Below, piece after piece: positions 38,600 through 63,091 of a DNA stretch of 64,000 bases. Position 1 is the stretch's first letter, and each line of letters opens with the position of its first letter. This DNA comes from Lepidodermella squamata. Taxonomy: Eukaryota > Animalia > Gastrotricha. Both the position numbers and the translations under genes were made by a program. The DNA is taken from the NCBI GenBank assembly GCA_047495785.1, contig JBLDXI010000015.1, positions 3,968,001 through 4,032,000 on the forward strand, in the 5' to 3' direction. The notes under the pieces were generated by a model. It made no database searches. It was not told the DNA's origin and saw only the letters and a list, made by a program, of their open reading frames with translations.

Positions 38600-38638
38600 G
38601 ACATTTTATTTTTTTTAATCAATAAAACAATATTTTTT

Positions 38639-40043
38639 TCAATAATTAACAAAGATTATTAAGGCCGTTATGTTTAGAACGAAAATGAAAAGGGAGAGAA
38701 TGAAACCGACCGTAAGGTCGAGTAGTCGCTGGATTGAAATTTTAGTTTTATCTAAAATTCGGAACTCCCTGGCAGCGATATTGGGAAATTGGCATATGAA
38801 GAGGACAACAAGTGTATGAATCGTCATCAGGGTGCCTAGAATTAGATTGCACGACGTGTAAAGCGAGAATAAGCTGACCGTTGACGTCTTCGGCAGTTCA
38901 TATGATAACTGGCTTTGAATGCTGAACGCGAATGCCAGAACAACCGTTACCGAAAACATTGGCCGATCTGGGGAATCCGGTTCCATTAATAGCGCAAGAA
39001 TCTGCAGGGATCCTAAACTGAAACAGGGTATGACAAAAGTTCCTATGTAAAAGACGTTGCTACGGCGAAGTCCAAGCCTGATTTTCGCTCGAGTGTAGCC
39101 GTATTTTGCATTGTTGGTATAGTATTTGAGGTAAAGGCTTGAAGTGAGGTTGGTCATGCTCCAGATCTGCCCTAGATCTATGAACTCGTCCTGGTCAACC
39201 ACCTCCGCAATAAGGGAGGAATAATGAATGTAACGCGAGTCCTCCCAAGCTTCCAATCCAATGAAGCAGTCCTGAAAATGCAATTAGTCCTAGGCGATTA
39301 TTCTTTCACCAAAATTTTCTCACCTGTTCGTCGGCGGGAAATTTGAATAAATCTGTGAAATAATTATATTTTGAAATGATCTTACTTGGGGCAATTTTTT
39401 GAAAAATTAAATAATTCGTTGACTTGAACTTACTGAGGGCACAGCTAGATTCAAGAGTGGTCATTGCAGTCCATTGGATCCGTCCATCTGGATAAATATA
39501 AATTGTGCATATATCGCCGCTCCTGGAGAACAAGAAATCGAAAAATTGTCCAAAATGCTGGCTAATCATTACCGTTGTAGCGCTAAGGTATCGGCTACAG
39601 CATTCATGTGCTATGGTGAACAATTATCTTTCCTCTTATTAGCGATATTGATGCCGATTATTTCTTACCGTGATAATTGGAATCCAAACGTGATTAGGGG
39701 GTACTTCGATTCGGATAACATCACTCCACTGACTTGCTTCGCTGTCATTGCCCCATCTAACGCAAGGATGGTACCAGGTCGCTTCAACGTCGAGTAATAC
39801 TGAGAAAGATTCCTTTTGCGTGTCGAGGCCGAAAAAGCGATACAAATGCACGGCAAGGTTGATGTTAACGGGATCGTTAGCCTGTTGTACCGGCCTGAAT
39901 GCGCGTTTATCCAACGAGCATTTATTTGCGAAATACTGATAAATTTCATATTCTTGGAGACTGAAATCAGCCGAGGTTGTGTTTTGGCCCCGGATCTCCG
40001 CGATAATCGTCATTAACAACACAGCAGAATTGGCAAAGCTCAT
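38639..40043 (-). CDS. Cys-loop channel subunit, subfamily A copy 1 (exons 40043-39669, 39610-39573, 39522-39434, 39352-39324, 39271-38639)
   Basis: RPV...VNINL, VWIP, DGRIQW, spliced Cys-loop CALNLFKFPADEQDC, LRRS and four TM segments. Confidence 0.88.
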
Positions 40044-40232
40044 CTCTATTTTCTAGCTGGAGATTCAGACATGCTAAGTATGGAAATATTAAATTATGAA
40101 ATACGGGAGAAAATATATGAAATTTCCAGGGGCCACATGAGATAGATCGGATATTTCCTCGTAAAAAATTAAAGGAACGTCCCCACCTTCGCCAGCCAAC
40201 ATTATTTATTTTATCCAAAATTGAGCATTTTT

Positions 40233-40512
40233 TCAACACAGCATAAAAGCACACTAAGCGCGATCGTGTTGATGGTTATGAAAAAGTCGTGAAAATTGCG
40301 CCGAAAATAACATCGAGAAACCGGATGTTTCCGGATGAGAAACGGCAGTTGAACAACCGAAAATTTCAAACATTTGCCCATTTTCCGTCGATGACTTTTA
40401 CCTTTGCCGGCTAGCCATTACTAGGGTGATCAAATTCTATTTTTTTACTATCGCCCTGACAATCAAACTATGAAATTCAAGTAGAGCGAGAGAAAGATTG
40501 GTGAAAAGATTC
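40233..40512 (-). pseudogene. Degenerate 3' fragment (M3-M4) of a subfamily B Cys-loop gene
   Basis: Aligns to 51647-51900 with indels. It sits upstream of A copy 1 just as gene B sits upstream of A copy 2. Confidence 0.8.
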
Positions 40513-40921
40513 TGAGCCATTCAGGCTCATTAACTATATGCGCAAAACGATTAAAATTAATCAATTTTTGAGCTTATTCAATTTTAAGGTGGATCATAAG
40601 CTGAATGTATATCGGCTATGTTTCGATCCGAAACAGCCTTGGAAGAACGCCCTGGCACCCTGAAATGGTTCCTCCTGAAGCCGTAAAACTAGGCTTGAAA
40701 ACTGAGTCTAAAATCAGCCAACGCACTGAGACCTGGGATCCCAGAGAACTGGCTGACACCCTCAGGCCGAGATGGGCACCCAGAACCCGTCTAACTGTTC
40801 CCCGATGTTCGAACCTGAAATCAAACAATAACTAGTTTTACATTACATTCGCAGCGGTGACGGTGGTCTATTCACCACTCCGCTCTCCTCAGTTTGTAGT
40901 CTAAACATCTTTCTTCGGGTT

Positions 40922-40992
40922 GAAAGATGAGAGTGAAAGATGAGAGTTGAGATGAGAGTTGAGAGTTGAGAGATGAGAGATGAGAGTTGAAA
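40922..40992. repeat. Purine-rich simple repeat (GATGAGAGTT-like units)
   Basis: Directly visible degenerate tandem repeat. Confidence 0.8.
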
Positions 40993-41066
40993 GCAAATGG
41001 TTTCCCAAATTTTAAAAGAGGGTTTGACGAGATTTTACTAAACGAATCACATTATTTTTCAGAAGA

Positions 41067-41372
41067 GGCACGGTGGCTCAGTTGGGTCGTTGAGCTGCTG
41101 TGTATCTGAGGGGATATCTCTCGGGACTGGGTTCAAGTCCTAGTGACCGAGCTAGGATCGAGTCCCCCTTGGCCCCGCGGAGATTTTACCAATCCATCGC
41201 GTTACAAAATAGAAAATTGGGAGACCGGGAGTATCAGTTAGACTGCACCAGTCAAATCCCGTCATACGGAAATCTCACTCACTTATGGTAAGACCTAGGG
41301 CTAGAGTAAGTGGCATGCCCTTCTAGTCCTCAAAGTTCGCTTTGAAACATAAATTATTATTGTTATTATTAT
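41067..41372 (+). mobile_element. tRNA-derived SINE
   Basis: A box TGGCTCAGTTGG (41074-41085), B box GGTTCAAGTCC (41130-41140), no clean cloverleaf, and a (TTA)n-like tail at about 41353-41372. Confidence 0.65.
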
Positions 41373-42260
41373 AAGCAATAGGTAACTTGGGTAAAACAAC
41401 CAAAACTCATTTAACTCAACCCGCCCCAATCCCACGTCTGACACCAGAAAACTCGGATATATTACCTCGTAAAAATAGAAAACGTATAAAAAATAATGGA
41501 AAAAACTGAGCTGACAGAATAAATAAAAATAACATGGGCTGATTTGATATTCGCTGGGGACGTTGGTGACTGAAACGGAGTCTTGCCCAGGTTCTTGATT
41601 AAAAAAACATGACCCAAGTTATCGATTTCACTGCAAACGTGATCAAATCTGACGACGTGAGCTACAACAGTTTCATTAGATGGGCTGGTAAACAAACTCC
41701 ACGAAACCAAGGTAGGTTCGGCTTGAGGATTCGATATCGAGATAAAAATAGCGTATTGGTTTTCTATCAAAACAAAACGGCTGGAATACAGGGTGTGAAA
41801 ACTTGGATATATTGAGCTTGGTGTCCTACATGTTTTGAACAATAACACAATACCATAAGGGCAATGTTGTTCATCGGTTCGAGTGGGATGTTCTTGATTG
41901 GGCCGACAAGCGGTAAAAAATGTCATGTTAGTTTTTCATATGTAACAATAAAAACAAGCGGTACATTAACTCTAGAGGCCATAGCTTTTATATTACAAAT
42001 ATGTCACGTATGTATTCCACTAGGGAAAACATCTCATAATGAAAATTAAAGGTGAATTGTTTAAAATGCGAGTGAATCGAGGCGTGTTTCAAAATCCTTT
42101 CCCCGAAGTAAAAGCAAGCGTAGAATTTTAAAGTCTATATTTGTATGGTATGACATGAGTAAAAAGTTCATATCTGATCGGAGCCGGAGGCGAGTTGAGA
42201 TGAGTTAATCGAGTACGGCGATTTGTTACCGTAAAATCATAGAGAAAAAAATGACCAGAG

Positions 42261-43855
42261 TAAGCACTCAAGCTAAAATTTTGATCTGCTTTCTCAAAAC
42301 GGATATCTCCGTTTTTCACCATATTTTGCATGACTATAGAACGCGAGCTGCTCTTTCACGTGGTATAAGATTTGAGGTGGGCAATTGCTGTGCAGTCTTG
42401 ATCTCATCAAAATAAATGAAACCATAGTGAAAAAGAGGTAAAAGCTGGTCGCTATTCTCTTGGATTTCAAGGCTGCATTTGATGTTATATGGCACAACAA
42501 CTTGCGGCTAAAACTAAAACAATCAGGTTTGCCGATTCCATTGGTAAGATGGATTTCGGACTTCTTAAGAGAACGCTCGTTTCAAGTAAGGGTTGGCAGC
42601 AGTCTAAGTGCAAGCAGAGATATTTTTTGCGGCGTACCGCAGGGGTCGCCTTTATCACCTCTACTTTTTATCTTTTATGCCATGGACATTCAGCCAAAAG
42701 GTTCCTCGCCGCAAGACGCCACCAGATCTGTCGCAAAAGGCACATTTGCTGACGACTCCCTAATCTGGGCCTTCGGCTACTCGATTGCAGCCAGCGTCGC
42801 GAGGCCAAGAAAGCGCCTCCGCTCAATCGAAGTGTGGTGCAACAAATGGCGGCTTCGCTTAAGCCCGGGAAAGTGTGAAGTGATCGTCTTCGGTAGATAT
42901 GGCAACTCGCCTCCTGAAGTACGCTTTGAGCTATATGGCCAGCCCCTGCCTCAGGTCAACCGCGCACGCTACCTCGGGATTTACCTCACACCCCAGCTAA
43001 GTTGGAATTACCATCTTGAAATAATCGCCTAAAAACTGAAGCCTCGCATTGGCGCCCTCTACGCCCTGGCCAAGCGGCATGTTTTGCCTAAAAACCTTTG
43101 TGTGCTCTTTTATAAAACAGTCCTGGAGTCCTTGGTTGCCTATGGAGCCCCTGCCCTTCGTTGCCTTGCGTCCTCCTCGGTTGGAAAACTGTTGGAAATC
43201 CAAGCCCACTGCCTTCGAGCCTTGCTTGATCTGCCCTTCGAAACGGAAGTAATTGACGTCATCGCTTACGCCGGAGTCGACTCCATTGAGGATGTCTTCC
43301 TTGGTGCCTTCAAACGCTATGGCGAACGCTGCTTAGCAGCAGGTCTAGATACGGCGGACTACATCAACTACGTCTGCGGTATCCGCCCAACGTCAGAAGA
43401 CGCTCGCAAAGTACTTGCCGAAAAGTGCCCAGCTTGGCATTTACGTGAAGTTTCAAAACCTAGCCAGCTGAGCCTCTCACACGACCCACGGGACTGGCTA
43501 CACGTCGTTTTATAACCAGCACTCTTTTTAGAGAAACGGCATATTATCTTTTCTACCGTTAATTTTATATCGCATTTTTACATTGTTGATTGCATCATAA
43601 ATTTCTAAGTCTATGAGGCTATGTAATCGCGCCGAGAGCGCCGTAACAGGCGGTGGTAGTAAAATAAAATCAGAAATATGCCAGGTATTTGTATCGTAAC
43701 AATGGTTGGGTTGCCCACCTCAAATCTTATACCACGTGAAAGAGCAGCTCGCGTTCTACATGCATGCAATAAATGGTGAAAAACGGAGATATCCGTTTTG
43801 AGAAATTCAATTTTGAATAAAAATGAAGATTCTGAAATTTTAGCTTGAGTGCTTA
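42261..43855. mobile_element. TIR element with about 120-bp inverted arms enclosing a LINE fragment
   Basis: 42261-42384 is the reverse complement of 43711-43855 (TAAGCACTCAAGCTAAAATT...ATTTGAGGTGGGCAA), with one indel. Confidence 0.75.
42440..43515 (+). mobile_element. 5'-truncated non-LTR retrotransposon (Jockey/I-like) reverse transcriptase with a premature stop at 43030-43032
   Basis: LDFKAAFDVIWH, GVPQGSPLSPLLF, FADD and RYLGIYL. Confidence 0.92.
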
Positions 43856-44974
43856 CCATAGACATAATTTAGGATAGACTACTTACTCACGAGAAAAAGG
43901 GTGCTACGCCATGGGCGCCAGATGGTCAGCTGATTCATCAGCGCTTGGAGGTAAAGTAAACAAAATATTCCATTGGTTTTTAGCTGGTTCCGTGACGGCT
44001 TCGATTTTCCCAAGGGTTTAGATTTCGCAACGCAGTTTATTATGAAAGAAAACATAAAAACATAATATTCAATTTTGAGAATAACTCAGACGGAGGCAGC
44101 TTGGCCTTGACAGGCTTTCATTCGGGCAGAAAAAAATCGGCCGTAGGAACCAGAATTTCTTCGAAAAATCCAGAAACTCGGACAGCATTTCGTCCCCGAT
44201 TTGCATAATTCGGCAGCGTCTCGTGGGTGGGATCGCGCAGGATCCTCGAACAGATTCGGTCAGCAAGTCGTCTCCAAAGATCAATAGAACGCGCCGGGAA
44301 CACTGAGCAGAAAATCCAGAAAATCGGACAGCACTTTGATCCCATTTCGCAGAAATCACCACCTAGGACCTTGCAGCAATCTGCCAGCGGCAGTTCCCAT
44401 TCGATTGCGTCGGAAACATCGACGTACCAAACACCGTTGCGACGCGCTAGTCCGAAACTGAGCCATTTTTAACAACCAGAGCTGAAATTCCGACGGACTG
44501 CTGTAGAGCTTCTTTCATCGCATCCAAACGTGTCGTTCAAATCGAACCAGTTTCATCGGATTGCAAAGGCGCACAGTTTTCGCGAACATTGATGTCGATG
44601 AAGGAAGCCGGTTTCAGGGTTGATGGGTTATCAAACCATTCGGCTTCAAATGCGGCAGCTTATTTGCCAATCGGAGCAGAATTCTGGGAGCATTTGTTCG
44701 TGAAATTCGAGCAGAATTTCGGTCCGACGAAAATCGACGTTCGAAACGAGACGAAATTCGGAAGAATGAGAAAAATTAGCGAGAATGAGTGGAAAGCCAT
44801 TTTTCGATGAATTTTCAAGTTGGAGAGAGAAACCGATTCATTGTTGTTCTGTGTTACGGGTATTTACAGTAACATTGCCTTATCGACACAGGAGTATGTA
44901 ATTAATTGATAATATAGATTGGTATGTTTATTTGGGTTTCGATTGTTGATAATTTGAGTAAAGGTGATGATTAA

Positions 44975-45365: not shown

Positions 45366-45430
45366 GTTGCTGATTTCCTCACCTCGATACGAGAGATTAT
45401 TATATTCTCAATATATTCTCAAATATATTC

Positions 45431-46074
45431 TCAATAAATAACAAACACAATTATGGCCGCTACGTTCAAAACGAAAATTAAAACGGAGAGAAAAACACCG
45501 AGTGTGATGTCGAGAAGTCGAGGGAATGAAATTTTAGTTTTACGGCATATATGATATTCCTTTGAAGCAATATTAGGAAATTGGCAGATAAAGAGGACAA
45601 CAAGGGTATGAACCGTCATAAGGGTGCCCAGAATCAGATTGCACGACGTGTAAAGCGAGAATAAGCTGACCGTTGACGTCTTCGGCAGTTCATATTATGA
45701 TAACTGGCTTTGAATGCTGAACGCGAATGCCAGAACAACCGTAACCGAAAACATTGGCCGATCTGGGCTTTGCGGTTCGATGAAAAGCGCAAGAATCTGC
45801 AAGATTCCCAAACTGACACTGGGTATGACGAAAGTTCCAATGTAGAAGACGTTGCTACGTTGAAGTCCCAGCATTATTTTTGCATGAGAACAGCCGTACA
45901 GTATTTGGTATAGTCATTGGTATAGTATTTGATGTAAAAACTTGAATTGATGCTGGTCAAGCTCCAGATCTGCCCTAGATCTGTAAAATCCTCGAGATCA
46001 ACCACCTCTGCTGAAAGGGAGGAATATCGAAGGGATCGCGTGTCTTCCCAAGCTTCGAATCCGATGAAACAGTC
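45431..46074 (-). pseudogene. Subfamily A Cys-loop pseudogene (last exon only)
   Basis: DCFIGFEAWEDTRS...VAAIIVFVIY, with a frameshift in loop C and an in-frame TAA after SQLS. Upstream exons are missing. Confidence 0.88.
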
Positions 46075-46258
46075 CTAAACATTCGATTAGGACTGTTTTG
46101 TGTGCTAATTCACTAATTCACCATAGCATATATCCCTGGGTTAGCTCACTTAAAGAATTGTTCGAATTTCCTAATCATTTTTCCTACGATCTATACAAAT
46201 TTCCTTCCGACAAACAGGTCAGAAGAGTTTGCAGAAGATTATCTTAGACGCACATTTT

Positions 46259-46365
46259 CAGGCTAGCCTATGTTTCGTCCGCCAACGCACGCCTATCAAG
46301 TATCAAGGCGTATAAACGGGCGAACAAATTCGTGGGCGCGCACCGACGAAACATAGGCGGGCCTG
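46259..46365. mobile_element. Small hAT-type MITE
   Basis: TIRs CAGGCTAGCCTATGTTTCGTC / GACGAAACATAGGCGGGCCTG, with 8-bp flanks CACATTTT / AACATTTT. Confidence 0.65.
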
Positions 46366-46386
46366 AACATTTTGAAATTTAAAATT

Positions 46387-46530
46387 TAATCGAATGTTTA
46401 GGACTGTTTCATCGGATTCGAAGCTTGGGAAGACACACGATCCATTCGATATTCCTCCCTTTCAGCAGAGGTGGTTGATCTCGAGGAATTTACAGATCTA
46501 GGGCAGATCTGGAGCTTGACCAGCATCAAT
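46387..46530 (+). repeat. 144-bp inverted duplicate of 45946-46089 (Cys-loop exon start)
   Basis: Reverse complement match with 3 mismatches by manual comparison. Confidence 0.9.
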
Positions 46531-46799
46531 AGAGATGCGACTCTCTATATAATGGCACATCGTTCACCTTGTGTTCCCCCGTGGATAATGTGTGTGAATT
46601 TCGGCAACAATACCATTCTTCTGCCGCAGTTGGTCCATCCAGAAATGAAAAATATGAATTGCTAGATAGATGGTGCATCTAGCATTTATGAGCAAAAAAT
46701 CAAAAACCTAGATTGGGGAATTTGTGATTTTTCCGATTTTTCAAATTAACTATAATTATACTGGGCGGATATGGCATTGGGTGTTCACCAAAGTGGTCG

Positions 46800-50030: not shown

Positions 50031-50076
50031 AGATGAGACATTTTATTTTTTTATTCAAAATAACACAAATTATTTT

Positions 50077-51464
50077 TTAATAAATAACAAAGATTATTAA
50101 GGCCGCTTTGTTCAGAACGTAAATTAAAATTGAGAGAAGTAAACCGAACGTAAGGTCGAGAAGTCGCGGGAGAGAAACTTTAGTTTTACGGCAAACTCGG
50201 AATTGCTTCGAAGCTAAATTAGGAAATTGGCAGATAAAGAGGACAACAAGGGTATGAACCGTCATCAGGGTGCCTAGAATCAGATTGCAAGATGTGTAAA
50301 GCGAGAATAAGCTGATTGTTGAAGTCTTAGGTAGTTCGGTCGATAGCTGGCTTTGAATGCTGAAAGCAAATGCTAGAACAACAGTGACCGAAAACATCGG
50401 CCGATCTGGGCTTTGCGGTTCGATAAAAAGCGCAAGAATCTGCAGAGTTCCCAAACTGACACTGGGTATTATGAAAGTTCCAATGTAAAAGACGTTGCTA
50501 CGACGAAGTCCAAGCATTATTTTCGCATGAGTAAAGCCATATTTTGCACTGTTTGAATAGTATTTGATGTAAGTACTTGAATTGATGCTGGTTAGGCTCC
50601 AGATCTGGCCTAGATCAATGAACTCGTCCTGGTCAACCACCTCCGCAGTAAAGGAGGAATATTGCATGTAACGCGAGTCTTCCCAAGCTTCAAACCCAAT
50701 GAAGCAGTCCTAATAGAAAGCATTCAATTATAGTCTCAAGTGATTATATTCTTTCTGCGATGGTTCTCACCTGTTCGTCGGAAGGAAATTTGAATAAATC
50801 TAAAAAAATTGTCTCAGATATAATTTATGAATTTTGTTTAATTGAACTTACTGAGGGCACAGCTAGATTCAAGAGTGGTCATTGCTGTCCATTGGATCCG
50901 TCCATCTGGATAAATATAAATTGTGCATATATCGCCACTCCTGGAGAACAAAAAACTCGAAAAACTGTGAAAGAATTCGGGCTTATCATACCTTTGTAGG
51001 TCTAGGGTATCTACTACCGCATTCATGTGCTATAAAAAATGATCATCTTCCTTATATTGGGAGGTTCATGTCAAGTCATAGTAGCTTCCTACCGTAATAA
51101 TAGGAATCCAAACGTAAGTAGGGGGTACTTCGATTCGGATAACATCACTCCACTGACTTGTTTCGCTGTCGTTGCCCCACCTAACGCAAGGGTGGTACCA
51201 GGTCGCTTCAACGTCGAGTAATACTGAGAAAGATTCCTTTTGCGTGTCGAGGCCGAAAAAGCGGTACAAATGCACGGCAAGGTTGATGTTGACGGGATCA
51301 TTCGCCTTTCGTACCGGCCTGAATGCAGTTTTATCCAGCAAACATTTATTGGCGAAATACTGATACATTTCATATTCTTGAATACTGAAATCAGCCGAGG
51401 TCGTATTTTGACCCCGAATTTGCGCGAATGCCAGAAAAATGACACACAATCGTAGAACTATCAT
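50077..51464 (-). CDS. Cys-loop channel subunit, subfamily A copy 2 (5 exons)
   Basis: Close paralog of 38639-40043 with the same exon structure. Cys-loop CALNLFKFPSDEQDC, M2 PDRPMFSVTVVLAF. Confidence 0.88.
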
Positions 51465-51646
51465 CTTTACTTTTCAAGCTGGATTTGGTTAAAATGTAGA
51501 GCGAAAAATCGCGAAATGTGGAGCAATGATGAAAATTCCTAGGCTCCACGTCTGGCAACTCGGATATTACCCCGTAAAAAATAAATAAACCTCCACACCT
51601 TCGCTTTCCAACATTATATTTACTTGATCCAATATTGCACATTTTT

Positions 51647-53045
51647 TCAACAAGGTATAAGCACACTGAACGCAATCGCGTTGATGGTTATGAAAAAAGT
51701 CGCGAAAATTGCGCCGAAAATTGCATCGAGAAATCGGATGAACGGCAGTTGGAAACCGAAAATTTTGAACATGTGCCCATCGTTACTCGACTTGTACTTT
51801 TGCTGGCTAGCCATTACTAGGGTGATCAAAGTATATATGGTTACTACAGCTCCGAGAATTAAGCTAAAATTCGAATAGAGCGAGAAAAGGATTGTTGAAG
51901 AGGTTCTAGGCAGTTCCGACGATAATTGACTTTGAATAGAAAAAGCAAACGCTAACACAATCGTCGCCGAAAAAACCGGCCGATCTGGGTGTTTTGGTTC
52001 GAAGCAGAGTGAGCTAACTTGAAGGACGCCTAGGCAGAGACATGGAATTAGAAACATTCCGATGTAGAAGCTACTTTGACGGCGTAAAACCAGGCGAACT
52101 TCGGCATGGCTGTATCTTATAGAGTCGCCCTCGTATTGCTTGTGGCGAATACTTGCATTCGCCCCGCTAAACATCCACATTTGACCTTCGTCCATAAAGT
52201 AATCTGGATCCCCGACTTCACAGGAGATATTTTCAAAGTTTATCAATCTTTCATCCTCCCAAGGTTCAAATTGAATGAAGCAAGTCTTAATTAAAAGAAA
52301 TGAAATAACACTGAAAAAATTTGAAAGTAGCTTACTTCAACCTCGGCAGGAAATTTTAGTAAATCTAAAAAAATCATAAAAATTAGAAATTAGATGATAA
52401 TTTGAAGTGAGCTTTCAATACTCAAAGTGCAAGTTGATTCGAAAACTGTCATTGGCACCCACGTCATAACTCCATCAGGGTAAATATAGACAGCACAGCC
52501 ATCTCCACATCTAACAATAAAATTTAAAATTTAGTAAATTCTTCAAAAAACCGAATGAATATTACTTGTAGAGAATCATGATGTCATTTGCGGCGTTCAT
52601 GTGCTGAAAAATTAGTAAACATTTCCGATACCATGCACCAGTTTCGGACATCGTAACTCACGGTAATAGTTGGAACCCAAACAGCACTCGGTGGAATGGC
52701 CAATCTGATGACATTAGCCCACTGAGCTGTTTCGTTATCCTGGCCCCATCGGATGCAAGGATGCCGCCAAGTTATCCCAACTTCGGCTAGCACTGAAAAT
52801 GTTTCCTTCTGCGTGTCCAAACCCAAAAATTTGTACATGCGGACTGCAAAACTGAGGTCTACTACGATGCTGGCGTTTGCAACGGGACGGAAAAATCTCT
52901 CATTCAACATGCAACGATCTGTTAGATATTGCCATAATTTAGCTTCTTGAAGCTCGAACAAGTCGGCAGTGTTCGAATCAGCCAAAACATTACCCGGAGC
53001 GTGAATTCCGAAAATTACTAAAAATAACCTGAAATTGGACGTCAT
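51647..53045 (-). CDS. Cys-loop channel subunit, subfamily B (5 exons)
   Basis: Same intron positions as A. Spliced Cys-loop CTLNLLKFPAEVETC, loop B FEPWED, M2 PDRPVFSATIVLAF. Confidence 0.88.
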
Positions 53046-53122
53046 TTTTTGGACAATGCCAGGTCAATTTTTATTATTCTCAACAATAAAATGTACATCA
53101 TATTACAGCGGAAAGGCGTATT

Positions 53123-54313
53123 TTAATTCCCTTCCGAAAGCATGTGCGTGATCAATCCGAGGCTGGTTAGACTACAAATTAAAAACGAGACGATAAGTAC
53201 ACATAGATCGAGGTACTGCATCCTTCTCAAGCCCTTTGATTCATCGTCCAATTTTTGCGTTATCATGTGCAGAATTTTAGGCGACGCGGCGCAGTAGGCG
53301 GTTATGATTGTTCCGATGACGAAGAGTGTGCTAATCAATAAAACTAAGTCAATAAGCTTAGAGCTCGGCGGAATTTTCGAATCGACCAGCCCTTGTAGGA
53401 CCATAAATGCCAGTAAAACGGTGACAGCGAAACTGGCCCGATCGTTAGAATCGGGCGGAATGAGGAGAGCGGCTAGCTGGCTGATGGTGCATAGCGCACA
53501 TGGGATGAAGATCGAGAAGATGAAAGGTGTTGGTTTCCGCCGGAGTGTGACGTGAAAATTGAACATAGGATTGTCGTAATCGCGCCAGTCAAAGTTTGGG
53601 TCATTCAAATCACAATTTTCCTCAATCTCTGAGGTGAAATTCACGAATTGCCAAATTGAATTCCCGCTAAGAAATGAATTTGCATATTCCAGGGAAACAG
53701 TTACCGAGTCGAGATAGGCCAGAGGGCAGTACTCATACAAACTGAACGTAATTTTGCAACTTTGCGTGTCGAACGGAAATTTTGTAAAGTCGAGATTGCA
53801 CAGGGTGTACATACTTGGCATCATAGGGTACCAGCAAACGGTGCCATTTTGCGTCACCTGGGCGTTGTTGGCGCCGTCAAACTCCGACACCGACGACTTC
53901 ATAGCCACATTAATGTCGTCACGGTTGTTAAGGTGGACGATAAATGGCTTGTAGACAATGCCTTGGAGCAGCTCCAGAAAAGGGATGTGCTTGAATTGTG
54001 GCAGATGGTCCCACCTTAACGAGTCATCCTGGTAGTAAACTTCGAGATAGTGGTTTATCGCTAGTGTTGTAGTAACGTCATCCATTTTCAGAATAACCAA
54101 CGGGCGAAGAATGATGCTGAAGTGTATCGTGTCATTGCTCGATCGAATAGGTTTGTCTAACGCTGTTATTCCGGCATCCGCTCGGCGCTGCAACAGGTAA
54201 TTCCTAAGTTTCGCTATGTCATTCGGCTCGAACTCGGCGTGCTGCCCAAACGAAAAGTGACGTAGGCTTTGAGAAGCGACGATTGAGAAAATTAAAAAAT
54301 CAATTGCGAACAT
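53123..54313 (-). CDS. Intronless Cys-loop channel subunit C copy 1 (396 aa from Met 54313)
   Basis: CNLDFTKFPFDTQSC, LRRK and M1-M4. Start chosen by comparison with paralog 60415-61605. Confidence 0.92.
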   Translation of the reverse strand: MFAIDFLIFSIVASQSLRHFSFGQHAEFEPNDIAKLRNYLLQRRADAGITALDKPIRSSNDTIHFSIILRPLVILKMDDVTTTLAINHYLEVYYQDDSLRWDHLPQFKHIPFLELLQGIVYKPFIVHLNNRDDINVAMKSSVSEFDGANNAQVTQNGTVCWYPMMPSMYTLCNLDFTKFPFDTQSCKITFSLYEYCPLAYLDSVTVSLEYANSFLSGNSIWQFVNFTSEIEENCDLNDPNFDWRDYDNPMFNFHVTLRRKPTPFIFSIFIPCALCTISQLAALLIPPDSNDRASFAVTVLLAFMVLQGLVDSKIPPSSKLIDLVLLISTLFVIGTIITAYCAASPKILHMITQKLDDESKGLRRMQYLDLCVLIVSFLICSLTSLGLITHMLSEGN

Positions 54314-54645
54314 CGTAATATTATGAAATTTATTGCTCATGAAAAGTGATTTTTTGTATTGCGCGTCAGCTAGCTCATTGTATATTGTTTCAAACATTTG
54401 CTCACCGGGAAAACTAATAAAAAATTGGAAATTTCGATTTTAATTAAATCTTTTATTGAGATAATTGGAAAAAATCTTGCTTTTCTAGCTTCAGTTCTCT
54501 AAGAAAATGCACCTTGGTAGGTTCTGTTACCTACAAGGGTTCGGCGAAATTTAAGTTGAAAGCTATAAAAGTCAGAAATGAGACGTCACAGCACGTTACA
54601 GCAATATTCTGTTGAAGAGAGAAAAAGCATTTCGCATACATTAAT

Positions 54646-55803
54646 TTAGCTGATCATATGAGAAACAATTGAAAGAGCGCATATAATACTGAAAGCTAAA
54701 AAGATCAAAAGCAAGGTCAAATCGAGGAAAAACATGAATCTTCGACCTTTTTGGTCACTTTTTTGCTTCCGGATTAGCCAATCGACAAGGCGAGGTGATG
54801 CGGCGCTGTATAGAGTTATCAGGGTCCCAATGATGAATTGAATAACTATTAATAGCATGATATCTGTGACCTTTGAACTTGCTGGAATTTTCTGGTCAAC
54901 TGCGCCTTGCAGGACCATGAACGCCAACAGAACTTGGACTGAATAGTTAGCTCTTTCGTTACAATCCGGTGGAATCAAGAGAGCGATTAATTGACAAATT
55001 GCGACAAAAACACACGGCAACAGCATTGAGAATATTGCAGATGTCGGAACTCTGCAGATAGTGATGTAAAATCTCACTTTCGGGAAGGTGTATGAATCCC
55101 AGCTTTCGTTTCCAACGCAGTTTCGCTCAATTACAGCCCCGCTGTCGTACATTTTCCAGGCCGCGTTAGAGCCGAGAAATTTAGCGTGTAAATCGAGGCC
55201 GACTTCGCTAAGACGGCTAAGGGGACAAAATTCGTAAATTCCGAAGGTTATATCACACCGCTGCTTGTCGAACGGAAATTTCGTGAAATCGAACTCGCAA
55301 AGCGCATTCAAGCTTTTCATTGGCGGATACCATGTAACTTCGCCGTCTGATGTTACTAGCACGTTTACAGTTCCGTCGAATTCAGACAGACCTGACTTCA
55401 TCGTAGCATGGATGTCGTCCACATTATTAAGTTGGACGATGAACGGCTTGTAGACATCATTTTGCGTAAAATCGAGAGTGTGAATGTGTTCAAATTCAGG
55501 TAAGTAGTCCCATCTTAGCGTTTCGTCCATATATACAATTTCTAGGTAATGGTTGATTGAGAGTGTCTGCGCAACATCGTCAATTCCCAGTAAGATTAGT
55601 GGCTTCATGTTCATCTCAAATACAATGGTTTCATTCCACCTTCGAATAGGCTTATCCATCGCGGTGATTCCTGATTTCTCGCGTCGTGTTTTCAAGAAAG
55701 AAACCAATCGCCCGATATCGTTGCGTTCAAGTCCCTGATCCATTGCTGCGATTAGTGACAGAGGACTCATGATTAGAATGAATGACGGAAAAATAAGATA
55801 CAT
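54646..55803 (-). CDS. Intronless Cys-loop channel subunit D copy 1 (ORF extends in frame to ATG 55920)
   Basis: CEFDFTKFPFDKQRC and four TM segments. The signal peptide starts at Met 55803, as in paralog 61934-63091. Confidence 0.92.
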   Translation of the reverse strand: MYLIFPSFILIMSPLSLIAAMDQGLERNDIGRLVSFLKTRREKSGITAMDKPIRRWNETIVFEMNMKPLILLGIDDVAQTLSINHYLEIVYMDETLRWDYLPEFEHIHTLDFTQNDVYKPFIVQLNNVDDIHATMKSGLSEFDGTVNVLVTSDGEVTWYPPMKSLNALCEFDFTKFPFDKQRCDITFGIYEFCPLSRLSEVGLDLHAKFLGSNAAWKMYDSGAVIERNCVGNESWDSYTFPKVRFYITICRVPTSAIFSMLLPCVFVAICQLIALLIPPDCNERANYSVQVLLAFMVLQGAVDQKIPASSKVTDIMLLIVIQFIIGTLITLYSAASPRLVDWLIRKQKSDQKGRRFMFFLDLTLLLIFLAFSIICALSIVSHMIS

Positions 55804-55951
55804 TTCGATAAAGTCGAGATCAAAAAGACTGTTGAAGAGGCCAGCTTGCAATATTTCATCGAGTGGGTTTGTTCCTGACAAGTGAGTGACGAATGAGTGC
55901 TTCAGGTGTTGTTTTCTCATCGATTAAAAATTCCCTTTATTATTGATTTCA

Positions 55952-56707
55952 GCACATTTTCCGGCCCGCCGGTGTTTCCTCCGCGCGCGCGCTCCTATTG
56001 GTTGGGGCTTATTGCGCAACATTTCAAGATAATTATAGCCTACCCCCGCTCGCGCGCACTCGAACGCGCCCTGAGCGCCCGTCCGCCAAGTCTAAGACAG
56101 TTTGCTAAGTCGAAGACAAGCATGCTGCATGCCAACAAAAATATAAGCCCACCCTTGAAAAGGATGTTTGGTATTGTTAATACGACAGCAAAATTGACTG
56201 CATCGTGGCGGCCTACACGACTTTGTTTGATGACTTATCTGTTCGTATCCAACAACACCAGCCATAAGAATTCAAAAAGTTGATTTCAGAGAAAGGATGC
56301 GATGGATTTTTTCGAAGAACACGCTTTTTTTTTATGAAAATTTTTAAAATGATAAAAAAATAAACAAGAAATAGCCATTTTAGGCGCGCTATTTTAGGCT
56401 ATTTTAGGGTGATGTTGAACACTTCAGGGAAAAATTCTGTTCTAAGTTGAAATCAACTTGAAATACCAATGAAAAAGCGAAAATACGAAAATTTCGCCTT
56501 TTATTCCACCCAACACGCATATCCAGCCACTAGCGCGCCGTTATTCTCCTGAATTTCGGACTTGTACATTTTCCTGCGCGCGCGCGCGAGGGAGGGCTGC
56601 AATTATGTGTTGCGCAATAAATGCGAGCGAGGCGCATTTACGCGTAAAACGAGCCAACCAATAGGAGCGCGCGCGCGGAGGAAACACCGGCGGGCCGGAA
56701 AATGTGC
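55952..56707. mobile_element. MULE-type non-autonomous element (756 bp)
   Basis: About 54-bp TIRs GCACATTTTCCGGCCCGCCGGTGTTTCCTCCGCGCGCG... and a 9-bp TSD TTGATTTCA (55943-55951 and 56708-56716). An empty site is visible upstream of paralog D2 (about 63245). Confidence 0.9.
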
Positions 56708-56814
56708 TTGATTTCAGGGGTTTCATTACACTGCTCATAACCTAGCGCTATTTTTTCTAAATAGATTCTAATCGAATTATCGTGTACCAAAATGGTTGGA
56801 TAGAACTGAGAATG

Positions 56815-57699: not shown

Positions 57700-59546
57700 T
57701 AGCAGCAAAGGCGGCTTCGACTTCTTCGATCGCCTCAACCCAGCCATCATCGGCCAGTGCAGCCTGCGCCCGAGCAGCGGCGATGTCCCAATCTTCTTCC
57801 GAGTCGGGTAGGACCTCCTTGATGTCGGCCATGCTGTAACTCGCAGAATCGAGAAAGGCCATGAAGCCTAATTCGCCCGAATCTAGTTGATCGAATAGGC
57901 TGTTGAGGCGGTCGTGAACATGAATGTAAGCTAGTCGGCGACGGACTTTCGGCGGTTTGCTCGGGTGATTTGCTCTTCACGAATGAGGAGCTCTGATAGG
58001 CGCCAAATGCCGAGGTGAATGCCATTAGCCAGCTTTCGAGAGCGGTAGTTCCAACCTAAGGAAGTTTCAAATAATTAGGCGAAAATGTATGCATAAAAAT
58101 CTTCTACCTTCCACGAAGTTATTCGTTCGAATATCTTCACGATAGACGTTTCAGACAACGACGCCCATTTTCTCAATCCAAAATTCTTCAAAATATCGAA
58201 GAACAGCTTCAGGTTCGGGTCAGCATTTGCAGGAACCATCAACTTCATTTGCTCAAAAGCGGGAACAACCAAGTTCTGGGGAAGCAAGGCGAGACACATT
58301 GTACGCCGAGCAACTCGACAAACTTAAGAGCCGTTTACCCCATACTCTGTCTTCAAGCCGTGGTTGTTCACCCGTCGAAGCAAGCACTGCTTGAAGTGAA
58401 ATAAACAGCCTTTTATCGCGACGTCATCGAATTTGGCTCTGATAGCTGCGAGAAGGCCGGTTTCAAAATCGCAGTTGATCTAAGCAACTCTCAGGGGCAT
58501 GTTAACCAGATCGCGAATCTCCTTCTTCAGAAAATCGAAAACTGCGCAGTATAAGTCAAGCGACTTGTGTGACATTAAAACGTAGACCGCCGGAAAAATC
58601 CCCGAACTCGATATCACGTGTATCGTAAATAATTGATAAAACCCGAGTTTATTAGGATCCACCTTAAAAGTGCCGTCTAGGAACCACCGATCTGACTCCG
58701 CTAGTCGGAACAGATCAGAATCGGTTGCGAAAACAAGAAAAAACCCAAATGAAAGCATCATCATCGATCGCAGAAAACGTTTCCCAATGGTCGAAACGAC
58801 GTATTTTCTTACTGGGTCCTCTTTGTCATCGATATCAACCGCCGCAATCTGGTCAAAATACTCCCCAACTGTCTTCAGGTTCCCCGGTTCAAACTCGCGT
58901 CGAATGGCGTAGAGGCTTTTCGACATCGAGGCAAAGTCATTCAGCAAATTAGCCGCTTCTCTAGCTAAATCTGCATTTTTCAGCGTGCAAAGATCGTTCA
59001 TGCGAGCCTTCTCCTCTTCGTAGACTGTCGGTTCGTAGAGGCCATTTCGGAATAAACCTTCGCGAAATTAGGAACCTGCTTGTGCTGGCCTGTGATCTTC
59101 TCGATGTTGTCGTCAGCAGTCAGAGTCAGGAGAGCACTGCAACGGTAACCCGAGCGGTACTTTTGGTAGCAATGACCATCGCTAACGGCAACGCAGTCCG
59201 TTTTCTTCGTGTTCAGGTAATGACAAAGAACCCTTTCTCCTTCGGGTTCCGGCGGCGGGATGGGTGCCTGCAGCGAAATTATCAATTTCACCTGTGCAAA
59301 AAACTGCATCATCCTCATCATAAGCGCGTGCTGTTAAGGCTGTTGTTCTTGCAGTTGCACCTGTGGTTGAACTTGAGGCAGCCATTGTTGGGCTTGCGGC
59401 TGAGGTTGTACCTGCGGCTCCGACGGCGGCGGTTGGGGCAGAAAAGGATTAGGCTCTTCTATCGGTTGTGGTGGCCATGGTGGAGGCGATGCTAGACGTT
59501 CGTCGTCACCCTCGGCCATCGGCGGCTGATTTTCGAGCTGAGTCAA
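57700..59546 (-). mobile_element. Mutator (MULE) transposase pseudogene
   Basis: FLDGTFK, FYQLFTIH, PAVYVLM..KS..LY, then DFETGLLAAI, GCYFHF and TNNFVEG across stops and frameshifts. FLYWCH-like N-terminal remnant. Confidence 0.88.
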
Positions 59547-60254
59547 GATGTATACGCCGTTTTTCAGTGTCGAATTCTAAAATTTTCCTCTCTTCGCTCG
59601 CGTTCAGTTTCACCCGGGATTTCATCAATTTCGAGCGCGGTGCCATCAAAAAGAAAAACAATTAGAACATGCAATCAATTTGTAATAGCTCAATAAATTG
59701 CACCAAATCCCAACCATGGTGTCCTACGAGCCATTCTCATAGGACACTGCTGTGTCATATGAGACAAAAAGTTTGGGAACCGCTGCCTTATGATGCGGTG
59801 CTCGACAAGACCAATTTTTATCAGACTTCGTTCAACACAAATACCCACCTGGTTGGCGGTCTTCCCCGTGGGAAAAACCAGTTTGAGTCGACCGCTTACC
59901 GACGCGACCGCGAGTAATAAATTTTGTTCTCAAGACTGTCAAGTTGTCACATTCGTCCTGTCCGATAATATGTCCCAAGTATTTCAACCTAAGTTTCTCT
60001 ATCGTACGACTCATCCATGACGTAAAAAATAAGCCTAATATCAATATTCGGAATATGGTCTATCGAGATATTCGAATATTCAAAACGCTACTGTTCATTT
60101 ATTTATCAATTAAATTGGATGCCACTTGGAAGAATAGTACATTCTTTTAACATCAAATTTGCTCAAATCAATAACGAAAATTACATTTAGCGGCCCTCGC
60201 AGCCTCGAATCGCATAGACAAATTGATTATACTCTTCGGATTACTTTAACATCC

Positions 60255-60360
60255 CAAAAAAATTACCAGGAGCGTGAATTACGAAAATGACCAATAACCC
60301 GAAATAGGACGTCACTTTTGGACAGTGCCAGGTCAATTTTTATTATTCTCAACAATAAAA
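60255..60360 (-). pseudogene. 5' remnant of a second subfamily B gene
   Basis: Aligns to 52990-53092 (signal-peptide codons plus the intergenic spacer to gene C). Confidence 0.7.
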
Positions 60361-60414
60361 TTTAAATTTACGTATTTAACGCGGCGGAAATGCGCATCAT
60401 ATGATACGATTATT

Positions 60415-61605
60415 TTAGTTCCCTTCCGAAAGCATGTGCGTGATCAATCCGAGGCTGGTTAGACTGCAAATTAAAAATGAGACGATGAGTACACATAGGT
60501 CCAGATATTGCATCCTCCTCAAGCCCTTTGATTCATCGTCCAATTTTTGCGTTATCATGTGCAGAATTTTAGGCGACGCGGCGCAGTAGGCGGTTATGAT
60601 TGTTCCGATGACGAAGAGTGTGCTAATCAATAAAACTAAGTCAATAAGCTTTGAGCTAGGCGGAATTTTCGAATCGACCAGCCCTTGTAGGACCATAAAT
60701 GCCAGTAAAACGGTGACAGCAAAACTGGCCCGATCGTTAGAATCGGGTGGAATGAGGAGAGCGGCTAGCTGGCTGATGGTGCATAGCGCACATGGGATGA
60801 AGATCGAGAAGATGAAAGGTGTTGGTTTCCGCCGAAGCCTGACGTAAAATCTGAACTTGGGATGACGATAATCGCGCCAGTTAAGGTTTGGGTCATTCAA
60901 ATCACAATTTTCCTCAATCTCTGCGATGAAATTCACAAACTCCCATATCGAATTCCCGCTCAGAAATGAGTCCTTATATTCGAAGGAAACATTAACCGAG
61001 TCGATATATGAAAGAGGGCAGTACTCATACAAGCCGAATGATATTTTGCAACTTTGCGTGTCGAATGGAAATTTTGTGAAGTCAAGATTGCACAGGGTGT
61101 ACATACTCGGCATCATGGGGTACCAGCAAACGGTGCCATTTTGCGTCACCTGGGCGTTGTTGGCGCCGTCAAACTCAGATACCGACGACTTCATAGCCAC
61201 GTTGATGTCGTCACGGTTATTAAGGTGGACGATAAATGGCTTGTAGACATTGCCTTGGAGCAGCTCCAGAAAAGGGATGTGCTTGAATTGAGGCAGATGG
61301 TCCCACCTTAGCGAGTCATCCTGGTAGTATACCTCGAGATAGTGATTTATCGCTAGCGTTGTTGTAACGTCGTCCATTTTCAGAATAACCAACGGGCGAA
61401 GAATGATGCTGAAGTGTATCGTGTGATTGCTCGATCGAATAGGCTTGTCTAACCCTGTTATTCCGGCATCCGCTCGGCGTTGCAACAGGTAATTCCTAAG
61501 TTTCGCAATGTCATTCGGCTCGAACTCGGCGTGCTGACCAAACGAAAAGTGACGTAGGCTTTGAGAAGCGAAGATTGAGAAAATTAAAAAATCAATTGCG
61601 AACAT
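60415..61605 (-). CDS. Intronless Cys-loop channel subunit C copy 2 (396 aa)
   Basis: 23 amino-acid differences from C copy 1 by manual alignment. Confidence 0.93.
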   Translation of the reverse strand: MFAIDFLIFSIFASQSLRHFSFGQHAEFEPNDIAKLRNYLLQRRADAGITGLDKPIRSSNHTIHFSIILRPLVILKMDDVTTTLAINHYLEVYYQDDSLRWDHLPQFKHIPFLELLQGNVYKPFIVHLNNRDDINVAMKSSVSEFDGANNAQVTQNGTVCWYPMMPSMYTLCNLDFTKFPFDTQSCKISFGLYEYCPLSYIDSVNVSFEYKDSFLSGNSIWEFVNFIAEIEENCDLNDPNLNWRDYRHPKFRFYVRLRRKPTPFIFSIFIPCALCTISQLAALLIPPDSNDRASFAVTVLLAFMVLQGLVDSKIPPSSKLIDLVLLISTLFVIGTIITAYCAASPKILHMITQKLDDESKGLRRMQYLDLCVLIVSFLICSLTSLGLITHMLSEGN

Positions 61606-61933
61606 CGTAATATTTTGATTTTATTGCTCAAAAAAGTTTCGCATTTTTTATTGCGCATCGGCTCGCTGTATTTTTTGAACATATTTTCCACTCGCCGGAA
61701 AAGTCAATAAAAATGGGGGAATTTATTTGATCATGACGACATCATTTATTGACCCACATTATTATCTTTTATTGACATTATAAAGAGGTAATATTTTTTG
61801 TACAAAATCATTCGGACAAAGACAAAGTCTTGCTTTCCTGGCCTCTGTCTCTAAGAAAATGAATTTAATTGGGGAAAATGAATGTTTAAAGCTAAAAATG
61901 TCCGAAATGAGATCAGTAAGGACATGAATTAAT

Positions 61934-63091
61934 TCAGCTCATCATATGGGAAACAATTGAAAGAGCGCATATAATACTAAAAGTTAAAAAGATCAAAAGC
62001 AAGGTCAAATCGAGGAAAAACATGAATCTTCGTCCTTTTCGCTCACTATTTTGCTTCCGGATCAGCCAATCGACCAAGCGAGGTGATGCGGCGCTGTATA
62101 AAGTTATCAGGGTCCCAATGATGAATTGAATAACTATTAATAGCATGATATCCGTGACCTTTGAACTAGCTGGAATTTTCTGATCAACCGCGCCCTGGAG
62201 GACCATGAAAGCCAACAGAACTTGGACTGAATAGTTAGCTCTGTCGTTAGAATTAGGCGGGATCAAGAGAGCGATTAATTGACAAATTGCAATAAAAGCA
62301 CACGGCAACAGCATTGAGAATATTGCAGCTATCGGAACTCTCCGGAGAGTGATGTGAAATTTTACCTTCGGGAAGGTAAATGTTTCCCAACTTTCGTTTC
62401 CAAAGCAGTTACGCTCAATTACAGCCCCCCTATCGTGCACTTTCCACGGCGCGTTGGTGCCTAGAAATTTAGGGTGTACATCGATGGTGACTTGGCTAAC
62501 ATGGCTAAGCGGGCAATATTCGTAAATTCCGAACGTGATATCACACCGCTGCTTGTCGAACGGAAATTTCGTGAAATCGAACTCGCAAAGCGCATTCAAG
62601 CTTTTCATCGGCGGATACCAAGTAACGTTACCGTCTGATGTTAGCAACACGTTTACAGTTCCGTCGAATTCCGACAGACCTGACTTCATCGCAGCGTGGA
62701 TGTCGTCAACATTGTTAAGTTGGACGATGAACGGCTTGTAGACATCATTTTGCAAAAAATCGAGAGTGTGAATGTGTTCGAATTCAGGTATGTAGTCCCA
62801 TCTTAGCGTTTCGTCATAATATACTATTTCTAGGTAATGATTAATTGAAATTGTCTCCGCAACATCGTCAATTCCCAGGGAAATTAGTGGCCTCATTGTC
62901 AGCTGAAATTCAATTGTTTGATTCCATTTTCGGAAAGGCTTATCCAACGCGGTGATTCCTGATTTCTCGCGTCGGGTTTTCAGGAAAGCAGCCAATCGCC
63001 CGATATCGTTGCGTTCAAGTCGCGGATCCATTGCTGTGATTAGAGACAGTAGAGGACTTGTGGCTAGCACGAATGACGTAATAAGATACAT
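61934..63091 (-). CDS. Intronless Cys-loop channel subunit D copy 2 (385 aa)
   Basis: Paralog of 54646-55803, with CEFDFTKFPFDKQRC and four TM segments. Confidence 0.93.
   Translation of the reverse strand: MYLITSFVLATSPLLSLITAMDPRLERNDIGRLAAFLKTRREKSGITALDKPFRKWNQTIEFQLTMRPLISLGIDDVAETISINHYLEIVYYDETLRWDYIPEFEHIHTLDFLQNDVYKPFIVQLNNVDDIHAAMKSGLSEFDGTVNVLLTSDGNVTWYPPMKSLNALCEFDFTKFPFDKQRCDITFGIYEYCPLSHVSQVTIDVHPKFLGTNAPWKVHDRGAVIERNCFGNESWETFTFPKVKFHITLRRVPIAAIFSMLLPCAFIAICQLIALLIPPNSNDRANYSVQVLLAFMVLQGAVDQKIPASSKVTDIMLLIVIQFIIGTLITLYSAASPRLVDWLIRKQNSERKGRRFMFFLDLTLLLIFLTFSIICALSIVSHMMS

Follow-up and report, generated by a model that had tools for sequence, protein, structure and literature searches.

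A 64-kb window, the whole stretch of DNA analyzed here, contains nine genes for pentameric ligand-gated (Cys-loop) channels, far more paralogs than chance would place there. This raises the question of what kind of receptors the array encodes and what these might do. The tblastn map, which placed each copy, together with Pfam matches and gene models, agreed with a sequence-only reading of this DNA that had described seven intact genes on the same strand (A1, A2, B, C1, D1, C2, and D2, at 38.6 to 63.1 kb) and two further family members at 11.2 to 15.1 kb (F and E). That reading had also counted at least four relics among the genes, and four were located (Table 1).

Spliced gene models built in this analysis give A1, A2, and B four introns each, of 50 to 81 nt and with GT-AG boundaries throughout, and a 29-nt micro-exon that codes for the Cys-loop core. 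There are two introns in F and none in C1, D1, C2, D2, or E. The start codons of C1 and D1 were set at conserved ATGs (positions 54313 and 55803, respectively). Longer N termini, as the upstream extensions of these two open reading frames (ORFs) would give, were ruled out: the equivalent stretch of C2 and D2 contains stops, and the RNA-like coverage described below also ends at the conserved ATGs. A search for trans-splice acceptor motifs 5' of the start codons gave no consistent pattern, and neither Rfam nor tRNA scans found a match in the window. Searches with the thiolase-like ORF and the hydrolase ORF yielded no informative named relative.

Table 1. Channel genes, relics, and mobile elements in the window
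Feature	Position	Strand	Exons	Protein	Remarks
F	11156..12982	-	12982-12359, 12307-12100, 12048-11156	574 aa	Cys-loop subunit
E	13924..15096	+	intronless	390 aa	
A1	38639..40043	-	5: 40043-39669, 39610-39573, 39522-39434, 39352-39324, 39271-38639	387 aa	
Relic, B-type 3' end (M3-M4)	40238..40469	-			stops and frame breaks; duplicated along with A1
Reverse-transcriptase fragment	42290..43805				between 95-nt inverted repeats; mobile-element insertion within the array
Relic, A-type exon 5	45440..46074	-			in-frame stop and frameshift; lacks exons 1-4
Relic, inverted A-type fragment	46315..46551	+			micro-exon remnant and start of exon 5
A2	50077..51464	-	5: 51464-51093, 51029-50992, 50940-50852, 50799-50771, 50709-50077	386 aa	
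B	51647..53045	-	5: 53045-52662, 52603-52566, 52510-52422, 52364-52336, 52285-51647	392 aa	
C1	53123..54313	-	intronless	396 aa	counted from conserved ATG; ORF reaches 54397
D1	54646..55803	-	intronless	385 aa	counted from conserved ATG; ORF reaches 55920
Element, about 760 nt	55951..56708				perfect 55-nt inverted repeats at both ends; directly upstream of D1
Relic, B-type 5' stub	about 60257..60320	-			traveled with the C block; start ATG changed to GTG
C2	60415..61605	-	intronless	396 aa	protein used for AlphaFold2 model
D2	61934..63091	-	intronless	385 aa	

The array has grown as A-B and C-D gene pairs were duplicated, in tandem or segmentally, and copies were also lost. Segmental duplications of two-gene blocks are visible in it, the inverted A-type fragment is 98% identical to positions 45946 to 46089, and the duplicated D block has the element of about 760 nt at its edge. 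The segmental duplications and relics back the earlier proposal that the array turns over by duplication and pseudogenization (birth and death). Four relics and mobile-element insertions interspersed with the genes would also be expected of decaying, nonfunctional duplicated DNA. That explanation is already largely refuted, and we consider it very improbable: the nine reading frames are complete and all splice sites are canonical, pairwise dN/dS is 0.12 for C1/C2, 0.33 for D1/D2, and 0.28 for A1/A2 at dS values of 0.24 to 0.36, and RNA-like coverage tracks the coding boundaries. The paralogs are thus under purifying selection. The genes also look transcribed, as contigs of a run labeled "RNA?" cover coding parts of A2, C1, and D1 and leave intergenic DNA uncovered; these contigs are short, the run type is a guess, and reads at 90 to 95% identity may come from paralogs or another strain.

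Constraint was also followed along the genes. In 60-codon windows, dN/dS was at most 0.33 in C1/C2 and A1/A2, and in D1/D2 it peaked at 0.72, at the signal-peptide end. Nineteen of the 23 replacements between C1 and C2 fall within codons 217 to 284, concentrating in the region that spans loops B, F, and C. Synonymous divergence is raised in this stretch too (dS of 0.64 versus 0.19; omega of 0.23). Diversifying selection between C1 and C2 was dropped for this reason and because no pairwise dN/dS exceeds 0.33; with dS raised as well, mosaicism or gene conversion under relaxed constraint explains the stretch better than positive selection.

Each of the nine genes encodes a signal peptide, a complete ligand-binding β-sandwich with a C-x13-C/FPFD loop (F/Y-P-x-D at its core), and four transmembrane helices; the vicinal Cys-Cys of loop C is absent from all nine. 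Matches to the Pfam domain Neur_chan_LBD had E values of 1e-20 to 1e-22 for C1, D1, C2, and D2 and 1.5e-20 for E; matches in the spliced genes were partial, in exons of A2 and B (the first exons) and of F. Pfam transmembrane-domain matches were also found. Just 78 to 83 residues follow the M2-M3 proline in eight of the nine genes. F alone has a long M3-M4 loop, of about 150 aa, and its N terminus carries a Thr/Ser-rich extension. An AlphaFold2 model of C2 (pLDDT 90.8, pTM 0.82) has helices at residues 262 to 284, 291 to 313, 322 to 355 (M3), and 358 to 392 (M4), with a two-residue turn linking M3 to M4, and a structural search matched it to nAChR beta, delta, and alpha7 subunits with a Z score of 29 over residues 30 to 396. 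The shared motifs, the missing Cys-Cys pair, and the reduced M3-M4 loop in all but one gene had been read from the DNA before, and they held up in the alignment and models; the motif alignment and C2 model likewise support the earlier description of minimal, non-alpha Cys-loop subunits.

We aligned these proteins with CC-bearing alpha-type subunits to compare their binding pockets. The TyrA position is occupied by Leu, Met, Arg, or Ile and the TrpD position by Tyr, Phe, or Leu; the TrpB position has Trp in A/B and Tyr in C/D/E and is not alignable in F. Judged from the alignment, the acetylcholine signature is gone, as the loop-C Cys-Cys is missing, TyrA and TrpD have no equivalent, and TrpB survives only in A/B. 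A/B also keep several loop-C aromatic residues. Such retained residues, and the strong purifying selection, would fit ordinary neuronal or neuromuscular channels gated by transmitters (amines, choline, betaine, protons, or similar) through diverged pockets, like nematode orphan ligand-gated ion channels (LGICs), and deorphanized invertebrate LGICs provide precedents (PMC8536830, PMC9962794). We regard this explanation as unlikely, however, because the intracellular domain, by which synaptic receptors are clustered and trafficked, is absent, because the array shows local turnover with relics, and because of the lack of close orthologs described below, which would be unusual for conserved synaptic subunits.

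In the M2 alignment of the nine genes, position -1' is Asp (Glu in D1), 0' is Arg, and 9' is Leu. The acidic -1' and Leu 9', together with nAChR and 5-HT3A as the best PDB matches, suggest a cation channel. Position -2' is Pro in A/B/E/F, an anion-channel trait, which makes the selectivity filter a hybrid.

The closest public match to these proteins has at most 32% identity, and no ortholog exceeded that value among 15 billion proteins; as the sequence-only reading would have it, no one-to-one orthology to conserved synaptic subunits emerged. The best named matches among pentameric LGICs (pLGICs) were mollusc proteins, from bivalves and gastropods, and fold searches of AlphaFold DB clusters and the ESM Atlas turned up nothing beyond generic nAChR-like clusters, with no named family any closer. 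A PDB profile search ranked nAChR delta, alpha7, and beta subunits and 5-HT3A first. These best matches (non-alpha nAChR beta1 and delta, alpha7, and 5-HT3A; profile E values of 1e-29 to 1e-23; Z scores of 28 to 29 over the extracellular and transmembrane domains) have in common with the window proteins a Cys-loop with FPFD, the acidic -1', and Leu 9'. Identity is only 18 to 22%, however, and the window proteins differ in lacking the vicinal Cys-Cys, TyrA, and TrpD, in the change of TrpB to Tyr in C/D/E, and, except in F, in lacking the intracellular domain with its MX and MA helices.

A phylogeny placed all nine proteins outside the mollusc-type nAChR-like groups. A branch with SH-aLRT support of 99% separates the nine window genes and 14 unnamed metagenome proteins from nAChR-like subunits of molluscs, nemerteans, echinoderms, and cnidarians; the tree is unrooted and has no outgroup, so that "clade" here means one side of a branch, and its members are long-branched. 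Within it, E is the sister of the C/D group. Clade proteins range from 347 to 410 aa; the median number of residues beyond the M2-M3 proline is 83 for them and 150 for the other proteins. None of 19 clade members carries the vicinal CC, which 21 of the 77 other matches have, and Trp occupies the TrpB position in 4 of the 19 and in 66 of the 77. Strict lineage specificity was not supported by this comparison. Each of the three subfamilies has relatives in metagenome eukaryotes, and the family is therefore older than the local expansions. On sequence evidence, the genes are a distinct, so far unnamed branch of nAChR relatives, and their independence from the known families in the tree is supported.

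Intronless tandem nAChR-like expansions are already known from lophotrochozoans. Those of molluscs and other lophotrochozoans resemble the window genes in their tandem, intronless, and highly diverged copies (PMC6896357), and many members have no CC tip and no known agonist, but the two sets lie on opposite sides of the 99% branch of the unrooted tree. By analogy with a proposal made for the expanded bivalve genes, the array might encode nonneuronal signaling channels with immune, stress, or developmental roles. Jiao et al. 2019 found such expression in expanded intronless mollusc genes (PMC6896357), window neighbors include Sushi, ankyrin/NLR-like, and adhesion-GPCR genes, and the metagenome contig of one relative carries Sushi and Anti-LPS (PF11630) genes. 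This evidence is circumstantial and the window clade is not nested within the mollusc families, which makes such a role improbable. The orphan receptor Alpo4 retains its aromatic cage and about 100 residues of intracellular domain (PMC10338036), whereas the window genes have an eroded cage and the intracellular domain is missing. The prokaryotic pLGICs GLIC and ELIC, like the window proteins, have a very short M3-M4 linker and no intracellular domain, but the window proteins have a eukaryotic Cys-loop, signal peptides, spliceosomal introns, and animal receptors as best matches.

We think it somewhat probable that these genes form a distinct, fast-evolving Cys-loop clade on the nicotinic/5-HT3 (cationic) side, whose members serve as extrasynaptic sensors not gated by acetylcholine. 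The subunits would assemble as pentameric channels, probably cation selective given Asp -1', Arg 0', and Leu 9', and would be gated by extracellular ligands other than acetylcholine. With no intracellular domain for synaptic anchoring, they would act outside classical synapses as peripheral, paracrine, or environmental sensors. Neighboring C and D subunits may coassemble, and likewise A and B. 5-HT3A channels stay functional when their M3-M4 loop is swapped for short peptides (PMC3335078). The long intracellular loop kept by F counts against the proposed explanation.

A more specific role would be that of a chemosensory repertoire like the cephalopod chemotactile receptors (CRs) or insect IRs, detecting environmental or prey chemicals in peripheral sensory cells. 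The tandem array with its pseudogenes, the loss of acetylcholine-binding residues and the intracellular domain, and the clustering of C1/C2 replacements across the binding loops would all fit, and cephalopod CRs are themselves intronless, tandemly expanded nAChR derivatives that have lost acetylcholine binding (PMC11526382). A, B, and F differ from them in having introns, and neither the top 60 PDB sequence matches nor the top 50 structural matches included a cephalopod CR. Such a role is possible but doubtful: the raised dS of the C1/C2 hotspot suggests mosaicism or gene conversion instead of positive selection, and dN/dS stays at or below 0.33 in 60-codon windows of C1/C2 and A1/A2 and peaks at 0.72 in D1/D2; similar bivalve expansions are tied to development, immunity, and stress (PMC6896357); and many Caenorhabditis elegans orphan channels proved to be neuronal transmitter receptors (PMC8536830).

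Beyond the preferred reading of non-acetylcholine-gated, extrasynaptic sensors, it is conceivable, though rather unlikely, that the genes represent a large unnamed animal Cys-loop family without an intracellular domain, publicly present only as anonymous metagenome ORFs, that was recruited as ionotropic chemoreceptors independently of cephalopod CRs and insect IRs and whose C-D and A-B modules are obligate heteromeric partners. Should the clade prove functional, animals as well as bacteria would be shown to maintain Cys-loop receptors that have no intracellular domain, and proteins this compact (about 385 aa) would lend themselves to structural studies and deorphanization. The array would be a further case of a neurotransmitter-receptor scaffold expanded and retuned through tandem duplication and, if expressed in sensory cells, the third time that ionotropic chemoreceptors arose independently from synaptic receptors. 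Automatic pipelines would overlook such genes, which have no annotated homolog above about 32% identity, or mislabel them "acetylcholine receptor delta-like."

C, D, and E also share two invariant extra cysteines, which are predicted to form a disulfide with each other.

The window DNA is compact and eukaryotic, with a GC content of ~42%, many long unbroken open reading frames (ORFs), and very short GT-AG introns. Seven co-oriented Cys-loop receptor subunit genes (A1, A2, B, C1, D1, C2, and D2), all on the minus strand, form an array at 38.6 to 63.1 kb, and two further genes (F and E) lie at 11.2 to 15.1 kb. The Pfam model Neur_chan_LBD matched C1, D1, C2, D2, and E with E values of 1e-20 to 1e-22, as well as the first exons of A2 and B; matches of Neur_chan_memb to the former five were weaker. 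All copies and fragments were placed by a tblastn map of every paralogue piece. Spliced models read from the DNA gave A1, A2, and B five exons each (372 to 384, 38, 89, 29, and 633 to 639 nt), separated by four introns of 50 to 81 nt that are GT-AG throughout. Because the 29-nt micro-exon holds the Cys-loop core, the C-x13-C motif of these three genes is put together from three exons. F is split into three exons and has an N-terminal extension rich in Thr and Ser and an M3-M4 loop of ~150 residues, and C1, D1, C2, D2, and E are intronless. C1 and D1 lie in long ORFs of 424 aa each, whose first codons were rejected as marking the true N termini, since the matching upstream stretch in C2 and D2 has stop codons; together with conserved ATGs, which give 396 aa for C1 and 385 aa for D1, this indicates that both ORFs run past the real start. 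The Pfam, tblastn, and spliced-model results bear out the sequence-only reading of seven intact co-oriented genes with relics and two relatives, with the starts of C1 and D1 corrected here.

Each of the nine proteins begins with a hydrophobic, signal-like segment and contains C-x13-C as well as four hydrophobic helices. An AlphaFold2 model of C2, built from a 96-sequence alignment (pLDDT 90.8, pTM 0.82), consists of a beta-sandwich and helices at residues 262 to 284, 291 to 313, 322 to 355, and 358 to 392. A two-residue turn connects M3 to M4 in this model, and the intracellular domain is therefore absent. Foldseek and VIA-align agreed that its top structural matches are the beta1, delta, alpha, and alpha7 chains of nAChR (Z of 28 to 29 over residues 30 to 396, 18 to 22% identity), with GABA-A chains ranking below them. 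A sequence profile search of the PDB likewise returned nAChR delta, alpha7, and beta, followed by 5-HT3A (E values of 1e-29 to 1e-23).

The acetylcholine-binding residues were compared with those of alpha-type subunits from the hit list that bear the loop-C Cys-Cys. None of the nine window proteins has this vicinal pair. At the aromatic-box position TyrA they carry Leu, Met, Arg, or Ile, and at TrpD they carry Tyr, Phe, or Leu; TrpB is Trp in A/B and Tyr in C/D/E, and F could not be aligned there. The C/D/E proteins share two extra invariant cysteines, one in YEY-C-PL after loop B and one in N-C of loop C, and a similar pair occurs in the anonymous metagenome proteins P0003 and P0004. These cysteines may form a putative disulfide that substitutes for the vicinal pair. 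In F, loop C instead contains a C-x10-C pair, as it does in glycine and GABA receptors. Positions -2' to 0' of M2 read (N/P)-D-R, or N-E-R in D1, and 9' is Leu. Read from sequence, these residues suggest a cation channel, though some proteins have Pro at -2', a trait of anion channels.

Among 5.8 billion proteins, a word-indexed search yielded only one weak match. When 1.84 billion representatives were searched exhaustively with an HMM, 8042 matches had E < 1e-3, just 24 of them below 1e-30. The top named matches were "acetylcholine receptor-like" proteins of bivalves and gastropods, several of which are fused predictions of tandem copies. By a profile of the nine genes, the nearest proteins are unnamed ORFs from ENA metagenomes (200 to 280 bits, versus 100 to 160 bits per domain for mollusc proteins), which are just 26 to 33% identical to the window proteins and sit on compact eukaryotic contigs, likewise in small tandem groups. 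In an unrooted maximum-likelihood tree of 76 rows, a branch supported at 99% (SH-aLRT) has the nine genes and 14 of these anonymous proteins on one side; the branches of this clade are long. On the opposite side are Biomphalaria, Mercenaria, Haliotis, Lottia, Mytilus, a nemertean, a crinoid, and a coral, which places this clade outside the mollusc expansions. Within it, P0003, P0004, and P0011 are sister to C/D/E, P0008 is sister to A/B, and P0015 falls near F; three subfamilies thus predate the local duplications in this genome. The 19 aligned clade members are 347 to 410 aa long, versus a median of 436 aa for the 77 other hits, with a median of 83 versus 150 residues after the M2-M3 proline. 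The vicinal Cys-Cys occurs in 0/19 versus 21/77, and Trp at TrpB in 4/19 versus 66/77. The proposed independence from conserved synaptic subunits is supported. What is new is a coherent clade in which the intracellular domain is almost entirely lost, the aromatic box is eroded, and annotated relatives are lacking; it has expanded in an animal with no close public-database match for its proteins.

P0008, the closest outside relative of A/B (at L002:355-1479), is a single uninterrupted ORF, so the four clustered short introns of A/B reflect gain in one lineage or loss in the other. An ENA metagenome scaffold, from a eukaryote (L001:1-13598), carries three intronless C/D/E relatives beside a Sushi-repeat gene and two Anti-LPS/scygonadin (PF11630) genes. 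This domain is known mostly from crustaceans and horseshoe crabs and may be a hint to the host lineage of that scaffold.

Features of the window, with window positions
Feature	Position	Strand	Remarks
Micro-exon, A1	39324-39352	minus	29 nt; encodes Cys-loop centre N-L-F/L-K-F-P-x-D/E
Micro-exon, A2	50771-50799	minus	as A1
Micro-exon, B	52336-52364	minus	as A1
C2	60415-61605	minus	extra cysteines at residues 196 and 233
Relic, B-type 3' end	40238-40469
Relic, A-type exon 5	45440-46074		stop and frameshift
Relic, inverted A fragment	46315-46551		98% identical to neighbour
Relic, B-start stub behind C2			ATG to GTG
Inverted duplication, A-type exon 5 start	45946-46089 / 46387-46530		98% identical
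Duplicated C block	52984-54434 / 60257-61724		89%
Duplicated D block	54640-55951 / 61928-63252		88%
Duplicated A block and B tail	38596-40513 / 50033-51907		80%
C1 stop to B start	53045-53123		78 nt; contains AATAAA
RT (RVT_1) fragment	42290-43805		flanked by 95-nt inverted repeats, 95% identity
MITE-like element, ~760 nt	55951-56005 + 56654-56708 (ends)		perfect 55-nt inverted repeats
GPCR (7tm_2)	8814-11084		two ORFs
Thiolase-like ORF	24292-25155
Ankyrin-repeat ORF	27310-30969		1219 aa

DNA self-comparison revealed three duplicated blocks, which indicate that the array expanded by copying the two-gene modules A-B and C-D. dS is equal for C1/C2 and D1/D2 (0.24), which fits one duplication of the C-D pair. 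These blocks and the four relics uphold the earlier suggestion of birth-and-death evolution. The inverted duplication of the exon 5 start is much younger than the relic around it. Remains of mobile elements lie between the duplicated modules, among them a reverse transcriptase fragment, whose flanking inverted repeats are unusual for LINE-type elements. A MITE-like element sits exactly where the duplicated D block ends on its upstream side. Besides the short gap between C1 and B, B and A2 are 183 nt apart and D and C ~330 nt; the spacing is either operon-like or the result of extremely compact promoters.

Pairwise dN/dS was 0.12 for C1/C2, 0.33 for D1/D2, and 0.28 for A1/A2. Between C1 and C2, 19 of the 23 amino acid changes fall within codons 217 to 284 (running from the last part of loop B across loops F and C as far as beta10). 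Positive selection was not demonstrated there, since dS is raised as well (0.64 versus 0.19), with omega at just 0.23. We take this pattern to reflect a mosaic or gene-conversion history in which constraint on the binding half was relaxed. Contigs from a run of 2015, labelled "RNA?" and derived from this organism or a sister of it, cover the coding parts of A2, C1, and D1, and cover falls to zero between genes and across most of B, which is suggestive of transcription without proving it.

Molluscs and other lophotrochozoans have massive expansions of intronless, tandemly arrayed nAChR-like genes, with proposed roles that include development, immunity, and stress (PMC6896357). Orphans without the Cys-Cys tip, Alpo4 among them, have resisted deorphanisation (PMC10338036). 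For contact chemosensation, cephalopods use chemotactile receptors, which are intronless derivatives of nAChR (PMC11526382). 5-HT3A channels are functional with the M3-M4 loop swapped for short peptides (PMC3335078); it is therefore plausible that a natural subunit lacking the intracellular domain works as a channel. We regard a chemosensory role for the window genes as a tentative and rather doubtful hypothesis.

A secretin/adhesion-type GPCR lies directly upstream of F. The 1219-aa ORF has ankyrin repeats as its sole Pfam match, in roughly its C-terminal half; the Pfam scan gave no match for the N-terminal part and so does not confirm a TIR-NB-ARC reading of this ORF. The top matches of the thiolase-like ORF are bacterial acetyl-CoA acetyltransferases (41 to 46% identity), and one anonymous JGI protein is 52% identical; horizontal acquisition may explain this, or the affinity may be an artefact of the word-limited search.
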